A stretch of DNA of 64,000 nucleotides from Podarcis vaucheri (lineage: Eukaryota), in the NCBI GenBank assembly GCA_965113315.1, contig OZ220367.1; one strand, written 5' to 3'. Each line of letters opens with the position of its first letter. Position 1 is the stretch's first letter. The translations under genes were made by a program, and so were the position numbers. This document shows, one piece after another, positions 3,601 to 46,634 of the stretch. Under the pieces are notes generated by a model. It did not search any database, was not told where the DNA came from, and saw nothing but the letters and a program-made list of their open reading frames with translations.

Positions 3601-5135
3601 AACTTTGTGTAGCAAGTAAATGTTGGAATATCTCCAGGGGCCTAAAGATTTTTACTAATTGGCATAAAGGGGTGCTGATTTCAGCCATCCATTTCTAATG
3701 TGGCAAGAGGACCAATGGTGGTTGCAGGTTTGTGCATGTGGTCATGGCGTGTTTTAACCAGGTAGTTTCTTCAGTCATTTTGCATATAGCAAAAAGATAA
3801 GGAGATGCTGCAGTGTGTAGTTTTGCTGCAAGTTATGAGTTTGGCCAACTGCTACACAAGCCCAGTGCCAAAGTCTAATGTGGCTGCAGCTAACAGCACT
3901 GCGGCTAACAGCACTGTTGTTCATCTCAGTTCACAAGATTTAAAAACCAATTCAGGGTGTTGGTAAGAACAGAAGATGGGGGAAGAAATAGTTGAAAGTC
4001 AGCAAAAGTCACCTTGGTAACTGCAGCATTACACTCGCTCAGAATGAAGAGACTTCAAACATGACTACAAACAGCTTTAAAGAAACAAAAAGAATTTAAT
4101 CATCTAAAGAATTAATCTGACAACTGCCCACACTTACACCTCCCACAATCCTTCAATCACTAGGGAATGAGCTTTAATCTCAGATTCCCCTCCAGTTCCA
4201 TAAAATGCTAGATATGCAGTCTTCAAACTGGGGCATTTCCGGCACACTGCTCTCATTCAAATGCTCTCCCTCTCCTAACACAGCAGCCTTGGCTTTTGTC
4301 AGTTTTTTGTTTCATTTCTTTCTGGATGCAAACCGAGGATCATGAATTATTTGTGTTGGTTGGGTGAAGCATTCAGTCTGGTGGAGATGTTTACAATATT
4401 TTTACGTGCTAGTTACTGCAAAAAAGAAAACTTGTGCCACCTTTTACTAACGCTTTTGGGAAGGAGCAGGGAGAGGCCAAGATGGGTGGCACAAAAATAC
4501 AAGTAATTGAAACAAAAGGCATGCTTAATTGTCATTTTTAAAGCTATAATTTTTAGATAAAAGAGAGTGCAGTAATGAATTATTGGGTTCTTCCCCTCCC
4601 ACACTGATTCCCCCCCCCCCAATCTAGGTTGCCTTCTTTTGCAAAGGCCAGGCATGGATTTTCATTCATGCTTGAAGAATGTGAAAATCTCCTGCATACT
4701 TGGTTTTCAGCTTAGTGTGTAGGTTATTGAACATCTAATGTGTGGGTGGCCCTTCCAGTACCCTCCCATTCAAAGGTTGGCAAGGCAAAGAGAAGGGCCT
4801 TCACTTAGGAGACAAATTATATGGGGAATTCTACGCTTCCGGAGTCAGTCTGTAAAGAAAATCTCTTGGTTCAAGAGTTAGAGCCAGCAAATCTGAATCA
4901 CATATGGGTTACGGGGAGCTTATTCCAGGGACTTAATATATTGTCTTGTTTTGAGAAGAAGCTCATCAGGATGTGGTCAAGCCAGGAAATGAGGCACAGT
5001 TCAGGTTAGGGGAATAGACTTCTGGAATACTGGAGCAGGCAGAGCTTTAAGGAGGAAATTGCAGCAGCAAAAGGCATGTGGAGGGTTCATGGACTTTTAA
5101 ATCTGTTCTGTTCGTTTTTCTGAGAAAGAAAAGTA

Positions 5136-5775
5136 CCGTATTTTTCGCTCTATTAGACGCACCAGACGATTGGACGCACCTAGTTTTTAGAGGAGGAAAA
5201 TAAGAAATAGGAAAGGAACGCAAAGCATCCTGAGCTAAGAGGGAGCGCTCCTCCATCTTCGCTCAGGAGGCTTTGTGGGGCTATCCCTGAAGCCAGGAGA
5301 GCAAGCAGGATCGGTGCGCACCAATCCCTCTTGCCCTCCTGGCTTCAACAAAAGCAAGCCTACTGGCTTTCCTCCCGCAAGAGCCGTGTGCTCTGTCCCT
5401 TCCCCCACCTCCTGCAAAAGCCAGGGATAGCTGCGCAAAGCCTCCGCAGGGCAGCGGGATAAAGGCTCCCCGCTCCCCTGCGGAGACTTTATCCCGTGGC
5501 TAAGCCAGAAGGTAGAACAGCCAGCGGGATTCCGCTTGCTGTCCTGGCTTCTTCTTTGGCTGTGCGCCTTCATCCCCTGCCCAGGAGAGGCTGCGCGTGG
5601 CTAAGGATCCCCCAAGAGTCGCACTCCCTTTAAAGAGGGCACAGAGTGTGCGTGCGGCTCTTTAAAGGGAGCGCTGAGCAGAGCCTCCTGCCTGCATTCG
5701 CTGCATAAGACGCACACACATTTCCCCTTACTTTTTAGGAGGGGGAAAGTGTGTCTTATAGAGCAAAAAATATGG
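5136..5775. mobile_element. Tc2/pogo-like MITE (640 bp) with GC-rich palindromic interior
   Basis: TA|CCGTATTTTTCGCTCTATTAGACGCAC ... GTGTCTTATAGAGCAAAAAATATGG|TA. ~25-bp TIRs and TA TSD. Confidence 0.85.
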
Positions 5776-6642
5776 TACATAAATGTCCCTTATGCTAACA
5801 GCCTATTCTGTAGCAGTCCAGAATGAACGCTGGAATATGTAACTATAATGTAACCTGTGATCAGATACACAACCTATGCTGTTGATAGTGGTGCAGCTAC
5901 ACTCTTGCCAGAAAAAGATACGGGCTTCTGAAGCTGCAGAGACACCTTTATACAATAGTACAGAATATTCTATTGATCTATGACGTTCTGTGGACCCAGC
6001 TACAGCGATTCTGGATGCATAACACTGCATTTGGACAACATGGCATTTGCATTCTGGCCATTGTTGTTTTATGTGTAGTTTGGTGCTCTGGTCAATAGCA
6101 GCCCCTGTCTCAGTAAGATGAATGAACCTGATCTTGTGATTAGGGCTTGGCGATGGAGAAGTTGGCACTGAAACACAATTCATGCGGGCAAGTTAACACT
6201 AGAGCACAATCTACAGTAAGAACAGTTCTATTTGGGGGTTTTGTAAACAGAAGCACAGCTACGTACATCTAAGTGGATACAGTTATTTCCATTATGCCCT
6301 AGAACTCCTGTGGTTTAGGGTTCTCTCAGCAGTGGACCTCATACAAAAATATAATGTGAGCCTAATCCCCAAAAATTGTAAATTTACTTGTAAATTGCTG
6401 TCTGGAGAAACACACAGCTGCCATTATTACTGCTTTAACACTAGAGCCAAATATATTGTCACAGTTGGAGCATCAGAGTATGAGCATGAATTCTGCCCTT
6501 TTTTTAGCATTACGATGAATACTTAATCTCATTTTTTATTATAACTACAGAGTAAAGACAGTTTGGTTCCAGTGTCCATAAGGTTTGCAACTGTTTTCTT
6601 AGCTTGCAACTTAGGGATGAAAAATTTCTCCATCACCATTTA

Positions 6643-6798
6643 TCGTATTTTTTCTGTGTATAGGACGCCCCCTATTTTGGGAGACTCCAAATTAAGAAAA
6701 CACTCTTTAGCACTACCTGTCTATAAGATAAGCCCCAATTTTAAACCTAATTTTCTGGTTAAAAAAACAACCCTAGTCTTATACACGGAAAAATACAG
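6643..6798. mobile_element. Short (156 bp) Tc2/pogo-like MITE; empty relative of the FKBP3-bearing element
   Basis: TA|TCGTATTTTTTCTGTGTATAGGACG ... GTCTTATACACGGAAAAATACAG|TA. TA target duplication and subterminal TATAAGA repeats. Confidence 0.8.
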
Positions 6799-9671
6799 TA
6801 ATTTGTATGCCGTCTTTCCATAGTTAAAACCATGTTCAAGACGGCTTACACGTGAAAAGATTTACATAATTACAAACATATCAAAAGTAGTCAAAAACAA
6901 TGAATAAAGCATATCAAAAGTACACAGCCATTATTGAACAATTTCTGCATGAATAAGATGTAAATAAATAAAATGTAAACATAAACATACAAAAAATAAT
7001 ATAACAGCACAAAAAAACCCAACAATCCCTCCTAAACAATGCCCCAACCCAAGAGTCTATTCAGCAGCGCCAGCTTTTGTAGCTGGAGTAAGTCAGAGCT
7101 CTGCCCTCCGAAGCCAGGTGGAACAGGCTTGTTAGGCAGGGAGCAAGTCTTCCACGACTCACAGCCATAATTTGATATTCTTCTGGTGACTATATGCTGC
7201 TTTTAGGAGTTAGTGTCAGATAAATAGAATGTGTGGGTAGCAGGATAATTTTGCTAAATGTAAATTGGAGATCAAGAAAGCTTAACTTAGTGGTCAATTG
7301 GCTGTTCAGCTATTTTAGAACAAAATGATAAACTGCCAAACTTATTATTTAAGAGTCTGCTCCATGCTATGGTTGGGTTTTTTAAAAAAAAACACACACA
7401 CAAAGGCCCCACCTACACATCAGTGCAGTTCTGTATCCTATCTAGTCTGAAATCATTTGGTGGGGAGTGAAATATATTTTCTCCAGAGGTTCCAGCTGCA
7501 TCAACCTGAATGTTCTATGACCCACATGGCAACAGTTCTGAAATGGTGGGCTGGAATAAATCAGTGAGCCATGGAAGACATCCTCCTCTGCACTTCTTGC
7601 CAGGGTTCATTAAATTGGGTGGGGAATCTCTGGCCTCTCTCCCCATCCATATTTCTCACCAGCCTTGCTCTGTACCCTGATCAAGTGCTTTTGCCTCGGA
7701 GGAATGTGTCCTTGCCATTTCTATTGGTTGTCAGAGTGGAGATGTGTAGAAATCTCTGAGTTGTACATAGTTGGGATATAGCCTGTTATAAGAAAGGTAA
7801 GAGTCACATCCATTGCTCTACTTGCTTTTGGATCTGGCTGTATGCATGACTGGCATGAACACCCTGGAAGGTTGCCCACGGGAGTCTGTGGCCCTTTGTT
7901 GAAAAGTATTCCCCATGCTTGCCTTAGATGAAATCACAAAGTGTTTTGTTCACATCTTCTTCACTATTTGCATGGAGAGATTTATTCCCTTTTTTTCACC
8001 CTTAGATTATAGTCATCTAAATCAGGGTAGGGAACCAGTGGCCCTTCAAATGTTGTTGGGCTTTTCTGTTGGCCCCAACCAGGGTGGCCAATAGCCAGGA
8101 ATGTTAGGAGCTAGAGTCCAGCAATATCCACAGAACCGTAGCTTCCCCATCCTTTCTTTATGCCTTCCATCTATTAAAGAATGGCTAGTATCTTATAGAG
8201 AGGTTGGCATTAATAAAACTTTTACCGGCTTAGGTGTGATTCTTTCAACTGGCTTTGTGCCTCACTGGGGAAACTGGCAGGAAGCGTTGAGGAAGGGTTG
8301 ACAAAGTTTTCCAAATCCAAACATTTGCAAAGAATCATGACCAAGTTTGTCAGGGTTGTATAACCTGAAGGCAGTAGCTATGGATATTTATTGCATGTGA
8401 ACAACCGGCTAACTGAGAAGTGATCCAATGTCATGTCCCTCCTGGAGGAATCTTTTTTGAGGGCTCACATGGAGTTCCTGAAGCTAAAATCACAATGGTG
8501 CAGTCTTTGGCAATGGCTCTTGAAGCAGATCTGTTGATTCTGTGCCCTCGGGACAGGTAACCCCTGTCTTGGAGACAGATGCCAAGTGGCCACCTAGTCC
8601 TCAGGAGTGCAGGTACCTAATGGTGCAGAATTGGTCAATCTCCAGCTGCAGGTACTTGCCTGAGGAATAAAGTATCCATTTGAACAAAGAGATATTTGGG
8701 AATAAGCCACTCTTCACAAGTCGGGGCTCTGAAGACTTGAGGCTTAAAAGCCTTCAGTTCTAGACAGAGTCCTGGAACAATGTGTGCACCAGCTCCTAGA
8801 CTTAAATATCCCCTGATTACCAAACTGTTCACTAGGACCTCTCGCCACCACCCTGATGTTTGGACTTGAGACTTCCTTCAGATCTTGCTTCTCATTCTGA
8901 CCTTGTGTTTGGACCTCAGACTGCCTTCAGACTGTGCTCCTGATATACACCTTCGCTAATTCCCATATGTAAATCAAGCAGCACTGTAAGAACTGACCTG
9001 ATCTCTTAAAAATTCCATATAACAGTGTTTGAAACTTTGCTTCTAAGGCAACCAGACTCGTTGAGTACCACTTAGGAATATGTTTCAAGTCTTCAGGTAC
9101 TGTTGTGTGTGAATGTATATTTGAATCAATACTAAGTGTTAACAGACATGGTCATTCTTCCTTTAGTGACTCCATCATCACAGATAATGTCTAGAGGCAT
9201 CAGTAACTTCTCACACTGATTCTAGCTCACTGTGATAATAAAATTGGCAGTAAGGTTGTTTCTACATTGAAGAAGATATTCACAGTGCCTTATAAGATTC
9301 TTGTAAAAATAGGCCATCCGTGATAGGATCTGGCTAGGCTGTGCAGTGAAAAATCCTCTGGAAAATATGCCTGTGGGTCTTTAACTGTGAAAAGGCAATA
9401 TTATGAATATTTACTTGTGAATGATCCTATTTTACTCAGTGGGACATGCTTGCTACATACATCTTGGCTATGTGAGAGGTTGGATGACTTAACAAATTTA
9501 TGTAGGCATACAAATATTAATATGGATACTGCAGGAGCTTGGTCTAGCAGGTTCCCAATATTTTCATGGTATGCTACCATCTCTAAGTGATTCCTCCAGC
9601 AGGGAAATGACATCAGGTCACTTCTCAGCCGGTTGTTCACATGCAGTGCAAAACTCAGTGGTACTTATAGC

Positions 9672-10930: not shown

Positions 10931-11078
10931 GCCTGGTTCGCTCAGTTGGTTAGAGCGTGGTGCTGATAACTCCAAGGTTGCAGGTTCGAACCCCATATGG
11001 GATGGCTGCATATTCATGCATTGCAGGGCATTGTACGAGATGATCCTCGGTGTCGATTCCAACTCTATAATTATGTGA
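10931..11078 (+). mobile_element. tRNA-Ile-derived SINE with CR1-like 3' tail
   Basis: GCTCAGTTGGTTAGAGCGTGGTGCTGATAAC...GGTTCGAACCC resembles tRNA-Ile, but the acceptor stem does not pair. Continues into gatgatcctc...ttccaactctataattatgtga, a CR1-like tail. Confidence 0.75.
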
Positions 11079-17710: not shown

Positions 17711-20700
17711 AGCCATGTTAAGAGGCAGTATGCCAGTGAATACAACAATATTCTTGGGAGCAACAGTGTTGGAGGGCTCTTGCCTTTATGTTGTGTTTGC
17801 CATCTTCCCAGGAGCTGGCCACTGTGAGAAATGGGTACTGCCTTTTAGGTAGTGGTAACAACTAATTCTGCGCTTGGTGTTGTCTAAGTGTAGCTGCATA
17901 TGTGATCATTGGGAAGAAATACACAAGAAATTGCAGCAGCCACTGCTCATACCGCATTCAAAATTTGCTTTCAAAAGTGCCTGGCATTTGGCTTGTCAAG
18001 CAAGTATGCAGGGCAGCACTTGAACCAGGCCTGGCATGGGAAGTGAGAAGCTCCACTGTGCACATTGAAGTCACTATTAAGGTTTCAGTCTGCCATTTTG
18101 TTGATCACCCTTGCTAATCAAGTTCTTCTCAAGCTTTGGCTATATAACAGTAATAATAGCAACAGCTGTAACAAATATTTTATTTATTTAACCCTTTGTC
18201 ATGTAGGGTCCCAAGGTGGCATGCAACAGCATAGGGAAACAAGTCACAAATGTGGCAAAACAGGTGAAAACCATAGCATCAGGTGAAAAAAGCAAACATA
18301 AGTTGCAACTGTACTTAACCAACCAGACTCAAAACCATCCTTGGAATGTCCTATTATTCAGCCATTTTTGCCTCCTGTTAGCTACTTTTCTTTAATATTT
18401 AACAGAAGGCTAATCCCTAACAGGCCTTGACTTGGGTTCTTATTTTTAGAGCAGGGAGCTTGATGTACCTTTTTGAAAGGTCCATGTCTTTGATGTGCAT
18501 TGAATCACTCTTAGGTTTCCTGCCCAAAAAATTCTGTTACGTTGATAAAGAAGGATTTCTCTTCATAAAAATCCTTATCCAAGCATTTCATAAGAAAATA
18601 AGGGTCTCTGACATGCAGTTTTTGAGATTACCTCTGAAGAGTAATTTCTTGTTTCAATAAAATAATGACAATTTTTTTCTTTAAAGTTCCCCAAGTCTCA
18701 GTGGCATGTTGGGAATACCAATATATGCTAAAGGTTTGTGGAACAATATAGGTTGAGTCTTTTGTGTCATTTCCTCAAGTCTCCTTTGAGTAGTGTAGCT
18801 TTACAGGGGAAGTGTGATGATTGTGACAAGCACATTCCAACACAATTACCAACACCCACCACAAACTGCTTTACTTTTTGCTTGAACAAACTAAGAGAGC
18901 TGACTAAAATATTGTACAATTGCTCTGTTCTAGTAAGGCTATCCAGAGGCAAGCATTTAGCAGTTTTATCACTTTCTCAAGATTTGTGTAGATACATAGC
19001 ACTGTGCAAATCATCCCCTAGGTTTGTTGAAGCAAAACAAGGCAATAGTGCCTTACCCTCTGGTAGGTGTTGAGAGGCACTATTAAGCCATGTTTAGCCT
19101 CTCCAGGGACCAGCATAGGGTTGATTCTACAGTCTAAGCTTGAATGACTCTGCCGCACCATCCCATTTTTAGCAAGAGAAGAAACAGTCAGCTCTCTCAA
19201 GTTTGCAAGCTCTTGCCCCATTAAATTCCTGGCTGCTATTCATATAAGAAGGTCCATTAGCAGTATGAAGATGCAGGCCTCCCTCCCTCCCTTCCACTGT
19301 TGGAGGGAAGGAGGCACTGTTCTTGGCAATGTCTGTCCAGAATTGGGTAGGTACATTGCAGAGAATTGGAAACAAAGGGTCCCATGGCATCAGTGTTCTA
19401 TTACCATAAGTGTTCATGGGCTGGAGTCCACTTCATCAGATACATGTAGTATTATACACAGTTGGCAGTATGGGTATAGAGAAGTGGGAAAGAGAGAGAG
19501 AGAGAGAGAGAGAAAAGGGGGCCAAATGGCTGTGAACAGCAACAAGTACATAAAATTGTCACAACTATAAACCTGAAGAGAAGGGGAAAAACATTCACAA
19601 AAGCAGCAATTGGTGATAATATAATTATCCTAAGTTTTGCAATTGTTAGTTAACATTTGTACTGAACAGGAAACTATTGTCTGTATTCAAGCCTGAACAG
19701 ACTTGGACTTCTTGGTTCTATTTCAACAATTTCATGCTGGAGTCTCCTTATAAAATAATTTCAGAGAATGCAATTTTTCAGGTTAGTAACAGGGCTCTGG
19801 GATGTTGAAATGTACTCTTACTGGTTTCTGAATGCTGCCATTTCTAGTGTCTGATTTGCAAACGTTTTGTCTTTTGCATAGAGACTGACCTTTATGTAGA
19901 AGGACATTGCTAGCAGGTGACAATATGAGCAGGTGCACGAGTCCTTAACATTAGGTCTTACAATAGTGCATCAACTTTGTCTTAATAAACACTCAGGCAT
20001 CTAGGGTTGCAGTAGGGTCTGTGTCCATGTACAGCTACTTAAAAAGATCTCAGCAAATATCAGACCCTGGGCAGGAGAGGCACTCCTTCTGGTAGTCAGA
20101 GCTCCAACTATTCCAGGCTTTCTATGTTAACCAGAACCTTGAATTTGAGAGTAGCTATCTTTAAGCAAGGATAAGTCAACTCAAGGCCTGTGAGAAAACA
20201 GTATCATTGTTCAGGATGGCCTGTAGATCCTTGACATTATGCAGACATGGTTTACTTGTGAGCTGTACATGACAGGTAGTGTTCTGTCAAATTTTCCCCT
20301 TTACGGGACTCTCCTGTAGTAGATTATTTCTAGATACAAGTATAACCTTGATGATCCTGCTTTTTCACTTCATTGGGTTGGTGTTAATTGTTTAAGAAAT
20401 TCCTGATGTAAATCCTAAAGGTGTGAGTCCCTGTCCAACAGGTTGGAACAGATGCAGTTCTCTTAATAAGACTTGGCTATGGACAGTGGATCTTGTAGTG
20501 TCTTTGTGGTGGAAGTTAGATTACAAATGTGCAGTGGGTTTCTGGTATAAGGTGATGCTTGTCTTTTTATTGCATAGAAGCACACTGGTGTCCAGAAAGT
20601 GAACTGGCTTCTTGAAGTAGTCCAGGCCCAGGTCCATGTTCAGACCATCAACCTAATTTAATAAACCTTAGTTTGTGTGATTCCATTTGGTGGCTTAAAC

Positions 20701-39153: not shown

Positions 39154-40730
39154 ATGTTGTTGTTGTTGTTGTTTAGTCGTTTAGTCGTGTCCGACTCTTC
39201 GTGACCCCATGGACCAGAGCACGCCAGGCACTTCTGTCCTCCACTGCCTCCCGCAGTTTGATCAAACTCATGCTAGTAGCTTCAAGAACACCATCCAACC
39301 ATCTCATTCTCTGTCGTCCCCTTCTCCTTGTGCCCTCCATCTTTCCCAACATCAGGGTCTTTTCCAGGGAGTCCTCTCTTCTCATGAGGTGGCCAAAGTA
39401 TTGGAGCCTCAGCTTCACGATCTGTCCTTCCAGTGAGCACTCAGGGCTGATTTCCTTCAGAATGGAGAGGTTTGATCTTCTTGCAGTCCATGGGACTCTC
39501 AAGAGTCTCCTCCAGCACCATAATTCAAAAGCATCAATTCTTCGGCGATCAGCCTTCTTTATGGTCCAGCTCTCACTTCCATACATCACTACTGGGAAAA
39601 CCATGGCTTTTACTATACGGACCTTTGTTGGCAAGGTGATGTCTCTGCTTTTTAAGATGTTGTCTAGGTTTGCCATCGCCTTTCTCCCAAGGAGCAGGCG
39701 TCTTTTAATTTCGTGACTGCTGTCACCATCTGCACTGATCATGGAGCCCAAGAAAGTAAAATCTCTCACTGCCTCCATTTCTTCCCCATCTATTTGCCAG
39801 GCGGTGATGGGCCCAGTGGCCATGATCTTCGTTTTTTTGATGTTGAGCTTCAGACCATATTTTGCGCTCTCCTCTTTCACCCTCATTAAAAGGTTCTTTA
39901 ATTCCTCCTCACTTTCTGCCATCAAGGTTGTGTCATCTGCATATCTGAGGTTGTTGATATTTCTTCCGGCAATCTTAATTCCGGCTTGGGATTCATCCAG
40001 CCCAGCCTTTCGCATGATGAATTCTGCATATAAGTTAAATAAGCAGGGAGACAATATACAGCCTTGCCGTACTCCTTTCCCAATTTGGAACCAATCAGTT
40101 GTTCCATATCCAGTTCTAACTGTAGCTTCTTGTCCCACATAGAGATTTCGCAGGAGACAGATGAGGTGATCAGGCACTCCCATTTCTTTAAGAACTTGCC
40201 ATAGTTTGCTGTGGTCAACACAGTCAAAGGCTTTTGCATAGTCAATGAAGCAGAAGTAGATGTCTTTCTGGAACTCTCTGGCTTTCTCCATAATCCAGCG
40301 CATGTTTGCAATTTGGTCTCTGGTTCCTCTGCCTCTTCTAAATCCAGCTTGCACTTCTGGGAGTTCTCGGTCCACATACTGCTTGAGCCTTCCTTGTAGA
40401 ATTTTAAGCATAACCTTGCTAGCATGTGAAATGAGTGAAATTGTGCGGTAGTTGGAGCATTCTTTGGCACTGCCTTTCTTTGGGATTGGAATGTAGACTG
40501 ATCTTCTCCAATCCTCTGGCCACTGCTGAGTTTTCCAAACTTGCTGGCATATTGAGTGTAGCACCTTAACAGCATCATCTTTTAAAATTTTAAACAGTTC
40601 AGCTGGAATACCATCACTTCCACTGGCCTTGTTATTTGCAGTGCTTTCTAAGGCCCATTTGACTTCACTCTCCAGGATGTCTGGCTCAAGGTCAGCAACC
40701 ACACTACCTGGGGTGTACGAGACATCCATA
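39154..40730 (-). mobile_element. BovB (RTE clade) LINE, 5'-truncated, recent insertion
   Basis: Uninterrupted RT frame running directly into a (CAA)n tail (tgttgttg... 39155-39173 on +). Candidate 7-bp TSD TATAATA at 39147-39153 and 40731-40737. Endonuclease domain absent. Confidence 0.95.
39173..40729 (-). CDS. BovB reverse transcriptase ORF (518 aa, N-terminally truncated)
   Basis: Non-LTR RT motifs KASGSDGIPAELFK, NYRTISL, QAGFR, FIDYAKAFD, GVRQGCILSP, LRYADD, FTFLGS. BovB-type C-terminus RALVHGVTKSRTRLND. Confidence 0.85.
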   Translation of the reverse strand: MDVSYTPGSVVADLEPDILESEVKWALESTANNKASGSDGIPAELFKILKDDAVKVLHSICQQVWKTQQWPEDWRRSVYIPIPKKGSAKECSNYRTISLISHASKVMLKILQGRLKQYVDRELPEVQAGFRRGRGTRDQIANMRWIMEKAREFQKDIYFCFIDYAKAFDCVDHSKLWQVLKEMGVPDHLICLLRNLYVGQEATVRTGYGTTDWFQIGKGVRQGCILSPCLFNLYAEFIMRKAGLDESQAGIKIAGRNINNLRYADDTTLMAESEEELKNLLMRVKEESAKYGLKLNIKKTKIMATGPITAWQIDGEEMEAVRDFTFLGSMISADGDSSHEIKRRLLLGRKAMANLDNILKSRDITLPTKVRIVKAMVFPVVMYGSESWTIKKADRRRIDAFELWCWRRLLRVPWTARRSNLSILKEISPECSLEGQIVKLRLQYFGHLMRREDSLEKTLMLGKMEGTRRRGRQRMRWLDGVLEATSMSLIKLREAVEDRSAWRALVHGVTKSRTRLND

Positions 40731-43415: not shown

Positions 43416-44627
43416 ATCTAGGCAAACCCAAGATTGCTTTCCAGGGTCTTGGGCACTTGCTACCTGATTCTTATAACTGGAGATGCCCTGGCTTGAACCT
43501 TAGCCCTTCTTCAGGCCAAACACCTGCTCTCTACTCACTGACCTATGGTTCCTCCCCAGTCTTTCTCTGATCACAAAGCTGACTTCATTGCTACTTTTTC
43601 TCCTAACTTAGGCTTCTTTCCTCCCTCCCTCCCTCGTTTTGCTTTCCCTTGGATTTTATACTGAGAATTTCTCTTAGCCCCTTTTTATCTTCAATGAGCT
43701 TAGCAAGCGTTCCCTAATTAACATAGAGGTTAAACCTAAACTCGAGTTAATTTGGGTTATTGGAAAGCAGCTTGGAATTTTGAAGGTGCAGGCGTGTGAA
43801 AAAGAAGGGAGAAAGATGGGCAAGAAACCGAGGCCTTCCTCTGCAGCTGTTTGCACTGCAGACAACTCCCTGCAGGGTGCCTGTTAGATGTCAGGCAAGA
43901 GATCCTAAAGGCAGGTGGGGGATGAGACAGGCTGGCAGGTCAGTAGCAGACAGGCTGTGATCAGGTTGACCGTAAGCCAGAAACCTGGAGGTATGGAACA
44001 TGAGCTGCCTTGCACTGAGTCAGACCTGTCTAGCTCTGTGTTGCCTACACAGACTGGCAGCAGCCTGCAGGATTTCCGGCACTGGTCTCTCCCAGCCTTA
44101 CCTGGGGGTGGAACCTGGAACCTTTCGCATTTAAACCAGATTCTTTGTCACCTAGCTATGGCCCTTAGCCACCTCACTCAAGCCCCTGCCCCTGCCCCCA
44201 TTATGCAGTGCCCAGACTGATGGAAGACAGGGGGTCTGTGGGCCTTAATAGCACCTGATCAGGTCTCCACAAGCACCTGGCTTTCTATGTCAAGAGGATG
44301 GATCACAGGCTTCTTAAGGAACGGCCTATAGAATTCTGCCCTCCCCCAGCTAGCAGGCTTGTTGATGTGTGGATTTGGTGTGCTCCTGGTTTATTCTATG
44401 GTATTTAGCAAGATTTATATACCACTTACTTGAAAAATAAATCAACAGTCTGCATAAGCAATGGATCCACATGGCTTTGTATTCAATTCAGGACCTGTGA
44501 CCATCCCTGGACACTTTTTATATGCACAGTAATGATGAGGCGAACAGCAAGAAATGGTTTGGTGGGATATTGTGTGAGCTCTATGGCTGTAGTATTGCAT
44601 AACCCAGACCCATAAAATGGGTGAGTA

Positions 44628-45623
44628 CCGTACTTTTCCGTCTATATGTCATCCCCGTGTATAAGACCCCCCCCTATTTTGGGGACTCAAGTTTTAAGAA
44701 AACGAGTTTCCCCGCCATCCCACCCTTGCTGTGTGGGAAACAAGACCACAAACACATTTTCTGGACTTCCAAGAGCATCTTCACAGTTTTCAAATATGGG
44801 GGACCAGGAGGAGCAACCTATCATTCAATATCCACCAGTTCTACTTCAAAGAAAAGTTTTGCATTTGGTGGAATTTTGGCATCCAGCTGCCCTTTCTTCC
44901 CATAAGCCCATTCTGGTTCGATTTCCAGGTGAGCAGTCTCCCCTTTGCTCATGGTCAGCAGAGCTTCGTCCCAGCCTCGTATCACTTTTCCAACGCTGAC
45001 TTTGAAGCTCAGTGGTTTTGCAGCTTTCTTTTTCTTTGAACTTGTTTGAATATTACTATCGAAGACTGTTCCATCTTGCAGCTTCCCTGCATACCAACAT
45101 TGAACAACATCACCCTTTTGGGGAAAGTTGATTTTATCCCCCTTCTTAAGTACTGACTTTGTATATTTTGGGGGGCCCTCATCCACAGCTTCCTCAGGCT
45201 TTGTCTCCTTGGGCTTCTCCTCATCAATTTTGACATTTTTCACTTGCTCTGCTACATGCTCTGGACTCTCAGTACCATGAAATCTCTTGGTTTCAAATAG
45301 CTCATTATATGCCATGATCAGCTGCTCCTTACTGGCTGTCTTGGCCACATTTTTTATCTGTCCTAGTAGTTTGTGCTCTGACAGGAACTTGTGCGCCGCC
45401 TGCTCCTGCAGGAAGCAGACAATCTCCTTCCTGGGCAGGGTGTCTCCGCGGAGCTCCTCAGGGCTCCAGGGCTGCGTGGGGGCCGCCATGGCATCACCTC
45501 CTTGCAAGCGTCGCCGCCTCACACAAGCGAGGGCTCCCTCACGAAGCCAGGACTCATGACCCCAGTTTTTTGACACAATTTTTAAGTCAAAAAAACCCTC
45601 GTCCAATACACGGGAAAATACTG
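44628..45623. mobile_element. Tc2/pogo-like non-autonomous TIR element containing the FKBP3 cDNA copy
   Basis: Left end TA|CCGTACTTTTCCGTCTATA; right end TACACGGGAAAATACTG|TG (reverse complement CAGTATTTTCCCGTGTA). Arms 44628-44702 and ~45556-45623 align by eye with the two halves of the empty element at 6643-6798. Confidence 0.8.
44821..45489 (-). CDS. FKBP3: Intronless FKBP3 (FKBP25, peptidyl-prolyl isomerase) retrocopy, 222 aa, ORF intact; retrogene or young processed pseudogene
   Basis: [14 protein letters not shown]...[14 protein letters not shown]...[15 protein letters not shown]...[31 protein letters not shown]...[26 protein letters not shown]. This covers the N-terminal helical bundle plus the FKBP domain with the FKBP25 basic loop. 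ATG at 45489 is in a gccATGg Kozak context. No introns, whereas vertebrate FKBP3 is multi-exon and not normally next to SUFU. Confidence 0.93.
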
Positions 45624-46634
45624 TGGGGAAACAGCTCCCTTAAATCCAGGGAGGTTCTTTGTGGCCTTCCATGAGGACAATGTACCGGTAATATCGATGA
45701 ATGAACGACAAAGCCTCAAATCAGCTCACCAGCCTGCATTCTGCCATGGAAAGAGCATCTGGTTTGAGCAAAGCTATTCTGGGCTTTGAAGCTCAGTAGG
45801 TGGCCTTGAGCAAGGTGTGTGTGCTCTCAGCCTAACCTACCTTTCAGGCTTGCTGGGAGGATAAATGAGGCAAGAGCTGCAGAGCATTGCACACTCTGAA
45901 AACTGCTAGAGAACTAAATCGCATTAGTTGAATTTCCTTCTGGGTTTGAAGGTTGAACATGGCAATACTTTGCATGCTGTATGTCCTTGGGTGCCCCTCT
46001 GCTTTTTAAAAAGGTATTGGGTAGTGGAGCTGGAAAGGACTTAAAAGCCTTTAGAGGGGAGGCCAGACTTCAGACTTGTAGTACCTATTTTGTGTTTGAC
46101 TTGAACCTCAAGATCTGCCACCTGGGGCCAGGTGTAAAAGACATACACTTAAGATGAAAGAATAGGGTACTTTGAAGTAGCTGCTGAGCACAAGGATTTG
46201 TTTTGAGTACCAACTGAACTTACAGTCCTCCTGCATCAAAATCCATTCCTGGTTAACCCAAGTGTTCTTAATTGGATCTGAAAGAAGGAGCCATTCAGTT
46301 GTTGCCATTGCCAAACAATTGGGAGTCAGAATTCTTGTTGATCTACTGCAGATCACAAGGAGAGTTACCAGTAGATCCTGATCTACCTTCTGCCCTGCCC
46401 TGGCCTATAGCCATGCCCACTTTAATGCCTTTCCCCTAACATATTGGGGAAGCGACAAAAGATCATTCGGCAAGCTGTGCATTTTCTTCTTTGTAGCCAT
46501 CAATGTGTCATAGTAGCTATAGCAAGATAACTGACATAGTCACCCACCCATTATGGGCTCTAATAATCAATGGCTGGAAAATGATCTGTAGGGTTGGGTA
46601 TGAGTTGAAATGTTTCAATTAGTTGAATGGAGGA

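Follow-up and report, generated by a model that had tools for sequence, protein, structure and literature searches.

How does a spliced copy of a cellular gene come to lie between the two ends of a DNA transposon? This question is raised by a locus in a 64,000-nucleotide stretch of the genome of the lizard Podarcis vaucheri (contig OZ220367.1 of assembly GCA_965113315.1; hereafter the window), where an intronless copy of FKBP3 (FKBP25) is bracketed by the arms of a miniature inverted-repeat transposable element (MITE). A preliminary description of this DNA had proposed, as one of two possible origins, a Pack-type terminal inverted repeat (TIR) element that moves as a unit with a host gene on board. 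The analysis presented here suggests that the locus is probably a natural member of the break-repair kind of cDNA capture, situated inside a MITE, and not a new kind of mobile element. Its formation in a single step, in which an incomplete FKBP3 cDNA was taken up where an old MITE, already resident at the site, had been broken, is the history that we tentatively favor, although we rate it at slightly below an even chance.

Anatomy of the locus

Public assembly contigs of P. vaucheri and of one congener, together with RNA-like runs of related species, were aligned to the locus, and the sequence from 44300 to 46000 was read directly. From 44628 to 45623, the composite opens with CCGTACTTTTCCGT..., preceded by TA, and closes with ...CACGGGAAAATACTG, followed by TG. 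The left target-site dinucleotide of the MITE, TA, occupies 44626-44627; contigs of the family align from 44626 onwards, and the sequence before this position is unrelated. The left arm (44628-44703, plus strand, 76 bp) opens with the terminus CCGTACTTTTCCGT, continues with a GTATAAGAC motif and ends in TTAAGAAAAC, while the right arm (45557-45623, plus strand, about 67 bp, with its start placed to within 3 nt) carries the other terminus and ends in CACGGGAAAATACTG. The dinucleotide behind it, TG (45624-45625), is a degenerate form of the TA found at this place in the family consensus. Between the arms lies a cargo of about 853 bp, all of it in minus-strand orientation. In the sense direction it consists of a GC-rich leader of about 53 nt (45503-45556), 13 nt of 5' untranslated region (UTR; 45490-45502), an intact intronless FKBP3 open reading frame (ORF) of 222 codons plus TGA (44821-45489, with the ATG at 45489 and the TGA at 44823-44821), the first 102 nt of a truncated 3'UTR (44719-44820), and a junction filler of 15 nt that reads ATGGCGGGGAAACTC in the sense strand (44704-44718). 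The anatomy originally reported, an intronless 222-aa FKBP3 ORF between two arms of a TIR element, was thereby recovered with all the sequence features that had been listed for it.

Both arms have a counterpart in an intact 156-bp copy of the same MITE family elsewhere in the window (6643-6798, plus strand), which has TA on both sides, as do members of the family in the contigs. The left arm is 83% identical to positions 6656-6701 of this copy and the right arm, likewise at 83%, to positions 6764-6799 (E values of 2e-6 and 7e-6, respectively). In addition, the arms attract hundreds of genomic contigs, which stack precisely over 44634-44695 and 45564-45625 and reach summed depths of about 3,500 and 1,900 in these two bins. 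Given the match to the intact copy, these pile-ups and the unrelated flank before 44626, the arms are true transposon ends. The family consensus of the right end in the contigs is ...CACGGAAAAATACGG/TA, from which the locus differs at 3 of 27 positions; the two termini of the FKBP3-bearing MITE agree at 16 of 23 positions. The intact copy was also used to place the breakpoints, and relative to it about 31 bp of the MITE center are absent at the locus, with the cargo in their place. The earlier statement that the cargo replaces the center of the element holds in so far as these 31 bp are missing, as measured on this one reference copy. The assignment of the element to the Tc2/pogo type in the preliminary description is putative; of the marks of a Tc1/mariner-pogo MITE, namely a TA target-site duplication and TIRs akin to those of a transposase-bearing, autonomous Tc2/pogo element, it is the TA flanks that were observed.

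Two further observations concern the family. The intact MITE (6641-6800) contains two internal direct sub-repeats, each opening with a GT(G/C)TATAAGA motif. At 5132-5200, the window holds the end of a related but distinct TIR family, TA/CCGTATTTTTCGCTCTATTAGACGCACC..., the first 12 or so nucleotides of which are as in the FKBP3-bearing MITE; the two may share a transposase source.

RNA origin and truncation of the cargo

An RNA-run contig from a related species, which carries the variants of the parent gene, is colinear with the window over 44748-45492 without interruption. In contrast, the parent genomic contigs of P. vaucheri break at 45040, 45388 and 45502 and continue there into long stretches that the window copy does not resemble. 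Since the RNA contig runs through 45040 and 45388 where the genomic contigs of the parent are interrupted, the window copy is spliced. All parental introns are absent from the cargo and the parent is intron-bearing; the cargo is RNA-derived, and on this point the preliminary description was confirmed.

The homology to the parent spans 44719-45502 only. On the 3' side it stops at one and the same base, 44719, in genomic contigs of two species and in one spliced mRNA contig. At this breakpoint the parent reads GGG/GTGAAA, where a splice donor site may lie. The parent mRNA contig continues for at least 638 nt past this position, and the cargo is therefore 3'-truncated. The retained 102 nt of 3'UTR align to the last exon of the parent and contain neither AATAAA nor ATTAAA in the sense strand. 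On the 5' side, the alignment with parent genomic contigs, from two species, covers 45388-45502 and is lost beyond, which leaves 13 nt of 5'UTR contiguous with the parent exon that carries the ATG. What had been described as a complete spliced gene with a leader of about 66 nt and a trailer of about 118 nt is thus complete in its coding sequence (CDS) but not as an mRNA: 13 nt of the leader and 102 nt of the trailer could be matched to the parent gene, whereas the other 53 or so and 15 nt, respectively, are unmatched.

The 15-nt filler matches neither the continuation of the parent nor the MITE center, and neither it nor the 53-nt leader has a significant source within the 64-kb window or belongs to an Rfam family. 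Matches to cargo positions 45120-34 (12 of 15) and to the region of the start codon (7 nt) were considered and lie within chance. The leader is unlike the parent DNA beside exon 1 and is covered by no parent or RNA contig at a likeness of at least 82%. It may represent an upstream 5'UTR exon of FKBP3 or, alternatively, further filler. Its boundary reads CAAG/GAGG, and when the N-terminal extensions of two FKBP3 models of Podarcis muralis were back-translated against it, a GAGGCGGCG motif was found to fit the N-terminal 'EAAA' of one of them (P0019), which we take as a hint only. The leader has retained its CpG dinucleotides (5 in 53 nt, observed/expected 0.9, compared to 0.11 in the flanks and 0.30 in the CDS), and this could reflect either germline hypomethylation of the 5' end of the copy, i.e., a promoter-like state, or a recent origin.

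Comparison of the 3'UTRs yielded some minor observations. At position 44760, a T is present in both the retrocopy and the parent of P. vaucheri, whereas both copies of the congener and the parent mRNAs of two other species have a C; the shared T is either a coincidence or marks a small tract of gene conversion between parent and copy. The parent 3'UTR is, furthermore, prone to indels at 44798-44809, where, relative to the retrocopy, the parents of two species have a 12-nt deletion and that of P. vaucheri has insertions of ATTTCA and of a T.

Absence of the hallmarks of target-primed retroposition

A canonical retrocopy produced by L1 through target-primed reverse transcription (TPRT) ends at the polyadenylation site, carries an A-tail and is flanked by a target-site duplication (TSD). 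The FKBP3 copy ends inside the 3'UTR, no run of A or T is present at its 3' junction (44690-44720), and no TSD, taken as about 7-20 bp, directly flanks the insert. The marks of the stringent long interspersed nuclear elements (LINEs) of the CR1/L2 type are also missing, as the 15 nt at the 3' junction are non-repetitive and show neither a LINE 3'UTR nor a microsatellite tail. In addition, no microsatellite and no LINE, long terminal repeat (LTR) or Penelope sequence adjoins the cargo. The earlier remark that the cargo is devoid of poly(A), microsatellite tail and TSD accordingly describes the junctions correctly. Several candidate marks were rejected. GGACTCA, at 44683-89 and 45550-56, is the only direct repeat, and as a TSD it would have its left copy 14 nt inside the arm (chance expectation about 0.07). 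An L1 endonuclease motif, TTTT/AAG at 44692-98, does not represent the insertion junction, as the MITE sequence continues across it. The imperfect microhomology between TTAAGAAAAC of the MITE and GGAATAAAAGC of the parent, just past the breakpoint, is too weak to be claimed.

A conventional origin might nevertheless have been obscured by later events. According to this possibility, a LINE inserted a full-length, tailed FKBP3 retrocopy with its TSD into the MITE, and a single deletion of about 0.7 kb, prior to the species split, subsequently took the distal 3'UTR, the tail, one copy of the TSD and some 30 bp of MITE sequence, with the 15 nt remaining as a scar. Like an L1 TPRT retrogene, the copy lacks the introns of its multi-exon parent, a housekeeping gene, and lies at a locus unrelated to it; its ORF is open, as in about half of the retrocopies of Anolis (54% intact; 404 retrocopies in all; PMC3136929). 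With retrocopies this common in lizards and TIR-derived DNA abundant, some are expected to have landed in MITEs by chance. The divergence of about 5% between copy and parent, compared to about 2% between species that share the locus, would have provided ample time for the deletion, and the leader is possibly a true 5'UTR, which would amount to a full-length 5' end. The window also contains a LINE fragment (39173-40729, minus strand), a 518-aa ORF bearing a reverse transcriptase domain (RVT_1, 142 bits), on the same strand as the retrocopy and 4 kb away from it. However, the copy departs from a TPRT retrogene in having no A-tail or TSD, in ending inside the 3'UTR, and in being accompanied by a target deletion and junction filler. 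Two events would be needed to account for this, the second of which must have erased all hallmarks at once without leaving any A-run or TSD behind. Filler is also less usual at a simple deletion junction, and three independent parent sequences end their homology at the same base. Taken together, we regard this two-step history, the strongest competitor of one-step capture, as somewhat unlikely.

Another way to obtain a tail-less copy is offered by reverse transcriptases other than that of L1, encoded by LINEs of the L2, CR1 or RTE type, by Penelope-like elements or by LTR elements, which might have used a nick in the MITE and copied the FKBP3 mRNA after priming internally or switching templates. 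Such priming could have begun at an A-run, GTGAAAAAG, that follows the truncation point closely on the 3' side in the parent mRNA. The A-run itself is absent from the copy, however, and the lack of a TSD as well as of any LINE, LTR, Penelope or microsatellite sequence beside the cargo also speaks against such an enzyme, so that this explanation appears improbable.

Copy number, orthology and age

Over the cargo, the contigs of P. vaucheri fall into two sets only, one of which is the locus itself (0 differences), while the second copy is 5-8% different. Every variable site in these contigs has exactly two states at near-equal depth, about 34x for the locus and 26-30x for the parent, and no third FKBP3-like copy is present among them at a likeness of at least 82%. 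Since there are only two FKBP3-like states at about equal depth, the composite is single-copy. A mobile Pack-type element is recognized by at least two copies with the same junctions but different TSDs or flanks, and the P. vaucheri contigs hold no such pair. The notion of a Pack-TIR that moves as a unit is therefore not supported: apart from the locus, the contigs contain no FKBP3-like sequence but the intron-bearing parent, each of the two at single-copy depth, and at the element itself the termini are degenerate and TG stands in for the right-hand TA.

These data also bear on the origin that had been preferred for such an element, namely that the MITE was excised by a transposase and that abortive repair of the gap from the sister copy recruited FKBP3 mRNA or cDNA as filler, giving rise to a mobilizable Pack-type element. 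Retention of both termini, loss of the center and presence of filler are indeed the classic outcome of abortive gap repair (for background see PMC8277862), and the cargo is RNA-derived. But the composite occurs once, at single-copy depth, its right TSD is TG and its termini agree at no more than the 16 of 23 positions given above. Moreover, an element of 156 bp is rather short for synthesis to have started from either end and aborted, and the majority of single-copy Pack-TIRs in animals formed where a resident TIR element was broken, with no transposition involved (PMC8277862). The arms, in addition, look about twice as diverged as the cargo, and the MITE was probably old at capture. We consider this scenario rather unlikely. 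A gap filled at the DNA level from an older FKBP3 retrocopy, the source of which was later lost, would conform to the way in which Pack-TIRs are normally formed; a human parallel may exist in ARF6 within MER20, and an 'FKBP3-like' protein is annotated in Lacerta agilis (XP_033016556.1). As it requires an additional loss event, and the P. vaucheri contigs include no third FKBP3-like copy above the 82% threshold, we judge it very improbable.

The locus is shared with other lizards. In the congener, which is about 2% diverged, contigs join the left flank through the arm to the cargo, the cargo to the right arm, and the right arm to its flank, and thus represent the same filled locus. Between 46 and 59% of the 31-mers of the locus are present in nine further species, and no contigs leading from arm to arm without the cargo were reported among those aligned. 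The preliminary description had named a single copy, combined with an empty MITE in sister species, as what would refute its proposal; a single copy was found, whereas the sister species within reach, all of them close, have the filled MITE. A protein of Podarcis lilfordi annotated as FKBP3 (P0039, 170 aa) has nine of the derived residues of the window copy. Based on these nine residues common to both, it is a copy of the same retrocopy and most likely the orthologue. The P. lilfordi model stops at residue 170, and codon 171 of the window copy is CGA, one CpG transition away from TGA, which suggests a nonsense mutation in the P. lilfordi retrocopy. The protein of L. agilis mentioned above (P0022, 274 aa) has a foreign N-terminus and, internally, 37 inserted residues. 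It has G165S in common with the window copy and none of the other derived residues, and may be either a syntenic orthologue of the retrocopy or an independent copy.

With respect to age, copy and parent differ by about 4.7-5% of nucleotides (35 differences in 745 nt, as counted against an RNA contig of a related species), with no indel in the ORF. The arms, at 83% identity to the other copy of the family, contrast with a neutral divergence of about 5% on the retrocopy lineage. On these values, which come from short stretches rich in CpG and allow no more than a soft estimate, the age of the MITE would be about double that of the capture. Because the arms look about twice as diverged as the cargo, we lean towards a MITE that was already resident over repair coupled to its excision.

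Proposed capture of a cDNA at a break in a resident MITE

In the history that we tentatively favor, a double-strand break would have occurred inside a MITE already at the site, and the broken ends would have lost about 30 bp of its center. A partial reverse transcript of FKBP3 mRNA, comprising a short leader, the whole CDS and 102 nt of a longer 3'UTR, might then have been taken up in a single repair event and joined by end joining, with 15 nt of filler at the 3' junction and possibly more at the 5' junction. Fixation of the composite would predate the divergence of congeneric lacertid species, at least two and probably ten or more in number. One-step capture is favored because the copy is spliced and 3'-truncated, lacks tail and TSD, has unmatched letters at its junctions, sits where the center of the MITE was lost, lies in an element older than itself and is single-copy. 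The 3' truncation, the absence of a tail and of a TSD and the unmatched junction letters are also the features by which cDNA insertions at repaired breaks are described. The process would be endonuclease-independent break repair mediated by a reverse transcriptase (RT) product; the locus might equally be termed a single-copy, transposition-independent, 'gap-filled' Pack-TIR with an RNA-derived filler.

Endonuclease-independent insertion of LINE-1, as reportedly described by Morrish et al. in 2002, is said to leave the same combination of features as seen at the FKBP3 locus. Experimental breaks provide a similar picture. Cas9-induced breaks in mouse zygotes capture spliced cDNA fragments that have truncated ends and neither poly(A) nor TSD, and the junctions show microhomology or a few letters of untraced source (PMC4516963). 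This RT-product-mediated repair (RMDR; Ono et al. 2015, PMC4516963) and the lizard locus have in common a spliced, truncated cDNA, the lack of A-tail and TSD, junction letters of unexplained origin and the loss of target bases. The cases differ in that RMDR has been seen in experimental settings, i.e., Cas9-treated zygotes and repair-deficient cells, or involves fragments of retrotransposons, whereas the FKBP3 insertion is an old, fixed germline event that comprises a whole host ORF and for which a break would have to be postulated.

The second point of reference is the Pack-TIRs of animals. By their definition, two pieces of one TIR element, with at least 10 bp from either terminus, enclose 100-5,000 bp of inserted sequence (PMC8277862), and the FKBP3 locus lies within these limits. 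Like the single-copy Pack-TIRs of Tan et al. (2021, PMC8277862), it has two termini of one TIR element around a foreign insert, internal breakpoints, partial loss of the element and de novo insertion at a breakpoint, the latter being frequent at the breakpoints of such elements in the form of short stretches. The difference lies in the filler, which is spliced and RNA-derived at our locus. Intronless copies of multi-exon parents were dropped as retroduplicates in the pipeline of these authors, and the locus, having an intronless cargo and a multi-exon parent, falls to this filter (PMC8277862). The only comparable case in their study, ARF6 in MER20, was left ambiguous (PMC8277862). Pack-MULEs and multicopy Pack-TIRs, such as Ssk-FB4 in Drosophila (PMC8277862), likewise carry gene cargo between transposon ends, but their cargo is genomic DNA and their multiple copies with distinct TSDs prove transposition, while the FKBP3 locus is single-copy with decayed ends.

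Could the MITE itself have provoked the break? This would happen through excision-coupled abortive gap repair or through fragility of a hairpin, with lacertid TIR elements recurrently gaining reverse-transcribed host mRNAs, and we consider it unlikely. Hairpin fragility by means of a strong cruciform is unsupported: folded as single-stranded DNA, the intact MITE pairs only in its terminal 22 or so bp (z = -2.0).

Several points weigh against one-step capture. A two-step history, in which a normal retrocopy later suffered a deletion of about 0.7 kb, yields the identical end state. To our knowledge, germline fixation of a host cDNA captured at a break has rarely been documented. By comparison, retrocopies made by LINEs number hundreds per lizard genome, as the 404 of Anolis illustrate (PMC3136929). 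Should the 53-nt leader be a true 5'UTR exon from farther upstream, the copy would have a full-length 5' end, which is more typical of ordinary retroposition. The breakpoints, the deleted bases and the microhomology are deduced from one other copy of the family, the empty-MITE state being unseen, and the comparison of ages between arms and cargo rests on short, CpG-rich sequences.

The readings differ in what they would mean. One-step capture would provide a clean, naturally fixed vertebrate case of a host mRNA copy patching a chromosomal break, and one in which a whole ORF was delivered; such patching has so far been documented mainly in experimental systems. The two-step history would leave an ordinary, decaying retrocopy in a repeat. 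A break caused by the MITE would establish a hybrid route between class I and class II elements, by which retrogenes come to lie between usable transposon ends. Under either of the first two readings, a mobile gene-carrying transposon is without support at this locus. The case also points to a blind spot: as the sole metazoan survey of Pack-TIRs dropped intronless cargo, the frequency of RNA-derived inserts in TIR elements beyond chance is uncounted.

State of the FKBP3 reading frame

The ORF has the makeup of the FKBP3/FKBP25 family, i.e., an N-terminal basic tilted helix bundle (BTHB) followed by a C-terminal FKBP-type peptidyl-prolyl isomerase domain in a protein of about 220-224 aa. Both Pfam domains are matched over their full length, BTHB with 97.5 bits and FKBP_C with 102.2 bits. 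The best database match is FKBP3 of L. agilis with 94% identity, and the ORF aligns end to end with the structure of human FKBP25 (2mph). Thirteen amino-acid differences separate it from lacertid FKBP3, all of which arose on the lineage of the copy, and K124Q, H130Q, T134A, G165S and P202L among the changes in the copy hit residues that are invariant from fish to human.

It might be asked whether an ORF that has remained open is under constraint. From the differences listed, an estimated 14-15 nonsynonymous and about 8 synonymous changes occurred on the retrocopy lineage (binomial P 0.05-0.19), and these counts do not reject neutrality. Under neutrality, the probability of finding no stop codon is 0.2-0.4 and that of finding no indel 0.001-0.11, depending on the indel rate assumed. 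The parent scores higher than the copy for both Pfam domains (106.8 bits for BTHB and 110 for FKBP_C), and the RNA-like runs, two in number and from species other than P. vaucheri, gave contigs of the parent type only. Since neutrality is not rejected, the Pfam scores are lowered, intact retrocopies are common and the copy was noticed for being intact, constraint on the ORF is not demonstrated. The ORF, still open in P. vaucheri, would rather seem to be drifting from a strongly conserved parent.

Other features of the window

Two repeated segments lie near the locus. A highly abundant interspersed repeat has its core at 45824-45865, where summed contig depths reach 4,400-8,800 in the presumed-DNA runs of P. 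vaucheri and the congener; it occurs in the RNA-like runs as well, and the loose-end consensus before it reads ...GGGTGACCTTGGGCCAGTCACTGT. It is probably an element of the short interspersed nuclear element (SINE) type. In the left flank of the locus, 44386-44447 is a moderately repeated segment with a depth of about 290 over a baseline of 30. Farther away, 10931-11004 (plus strand) has an Rfam tRNA match of 33.2 bits (threshold 29) that was not called by ARAGORN and probably represents the head of a SINE derived from a tRNA, or else a tRNA gene in decay. Finally, a (GA)n microsatellite is present at 19488-19515.

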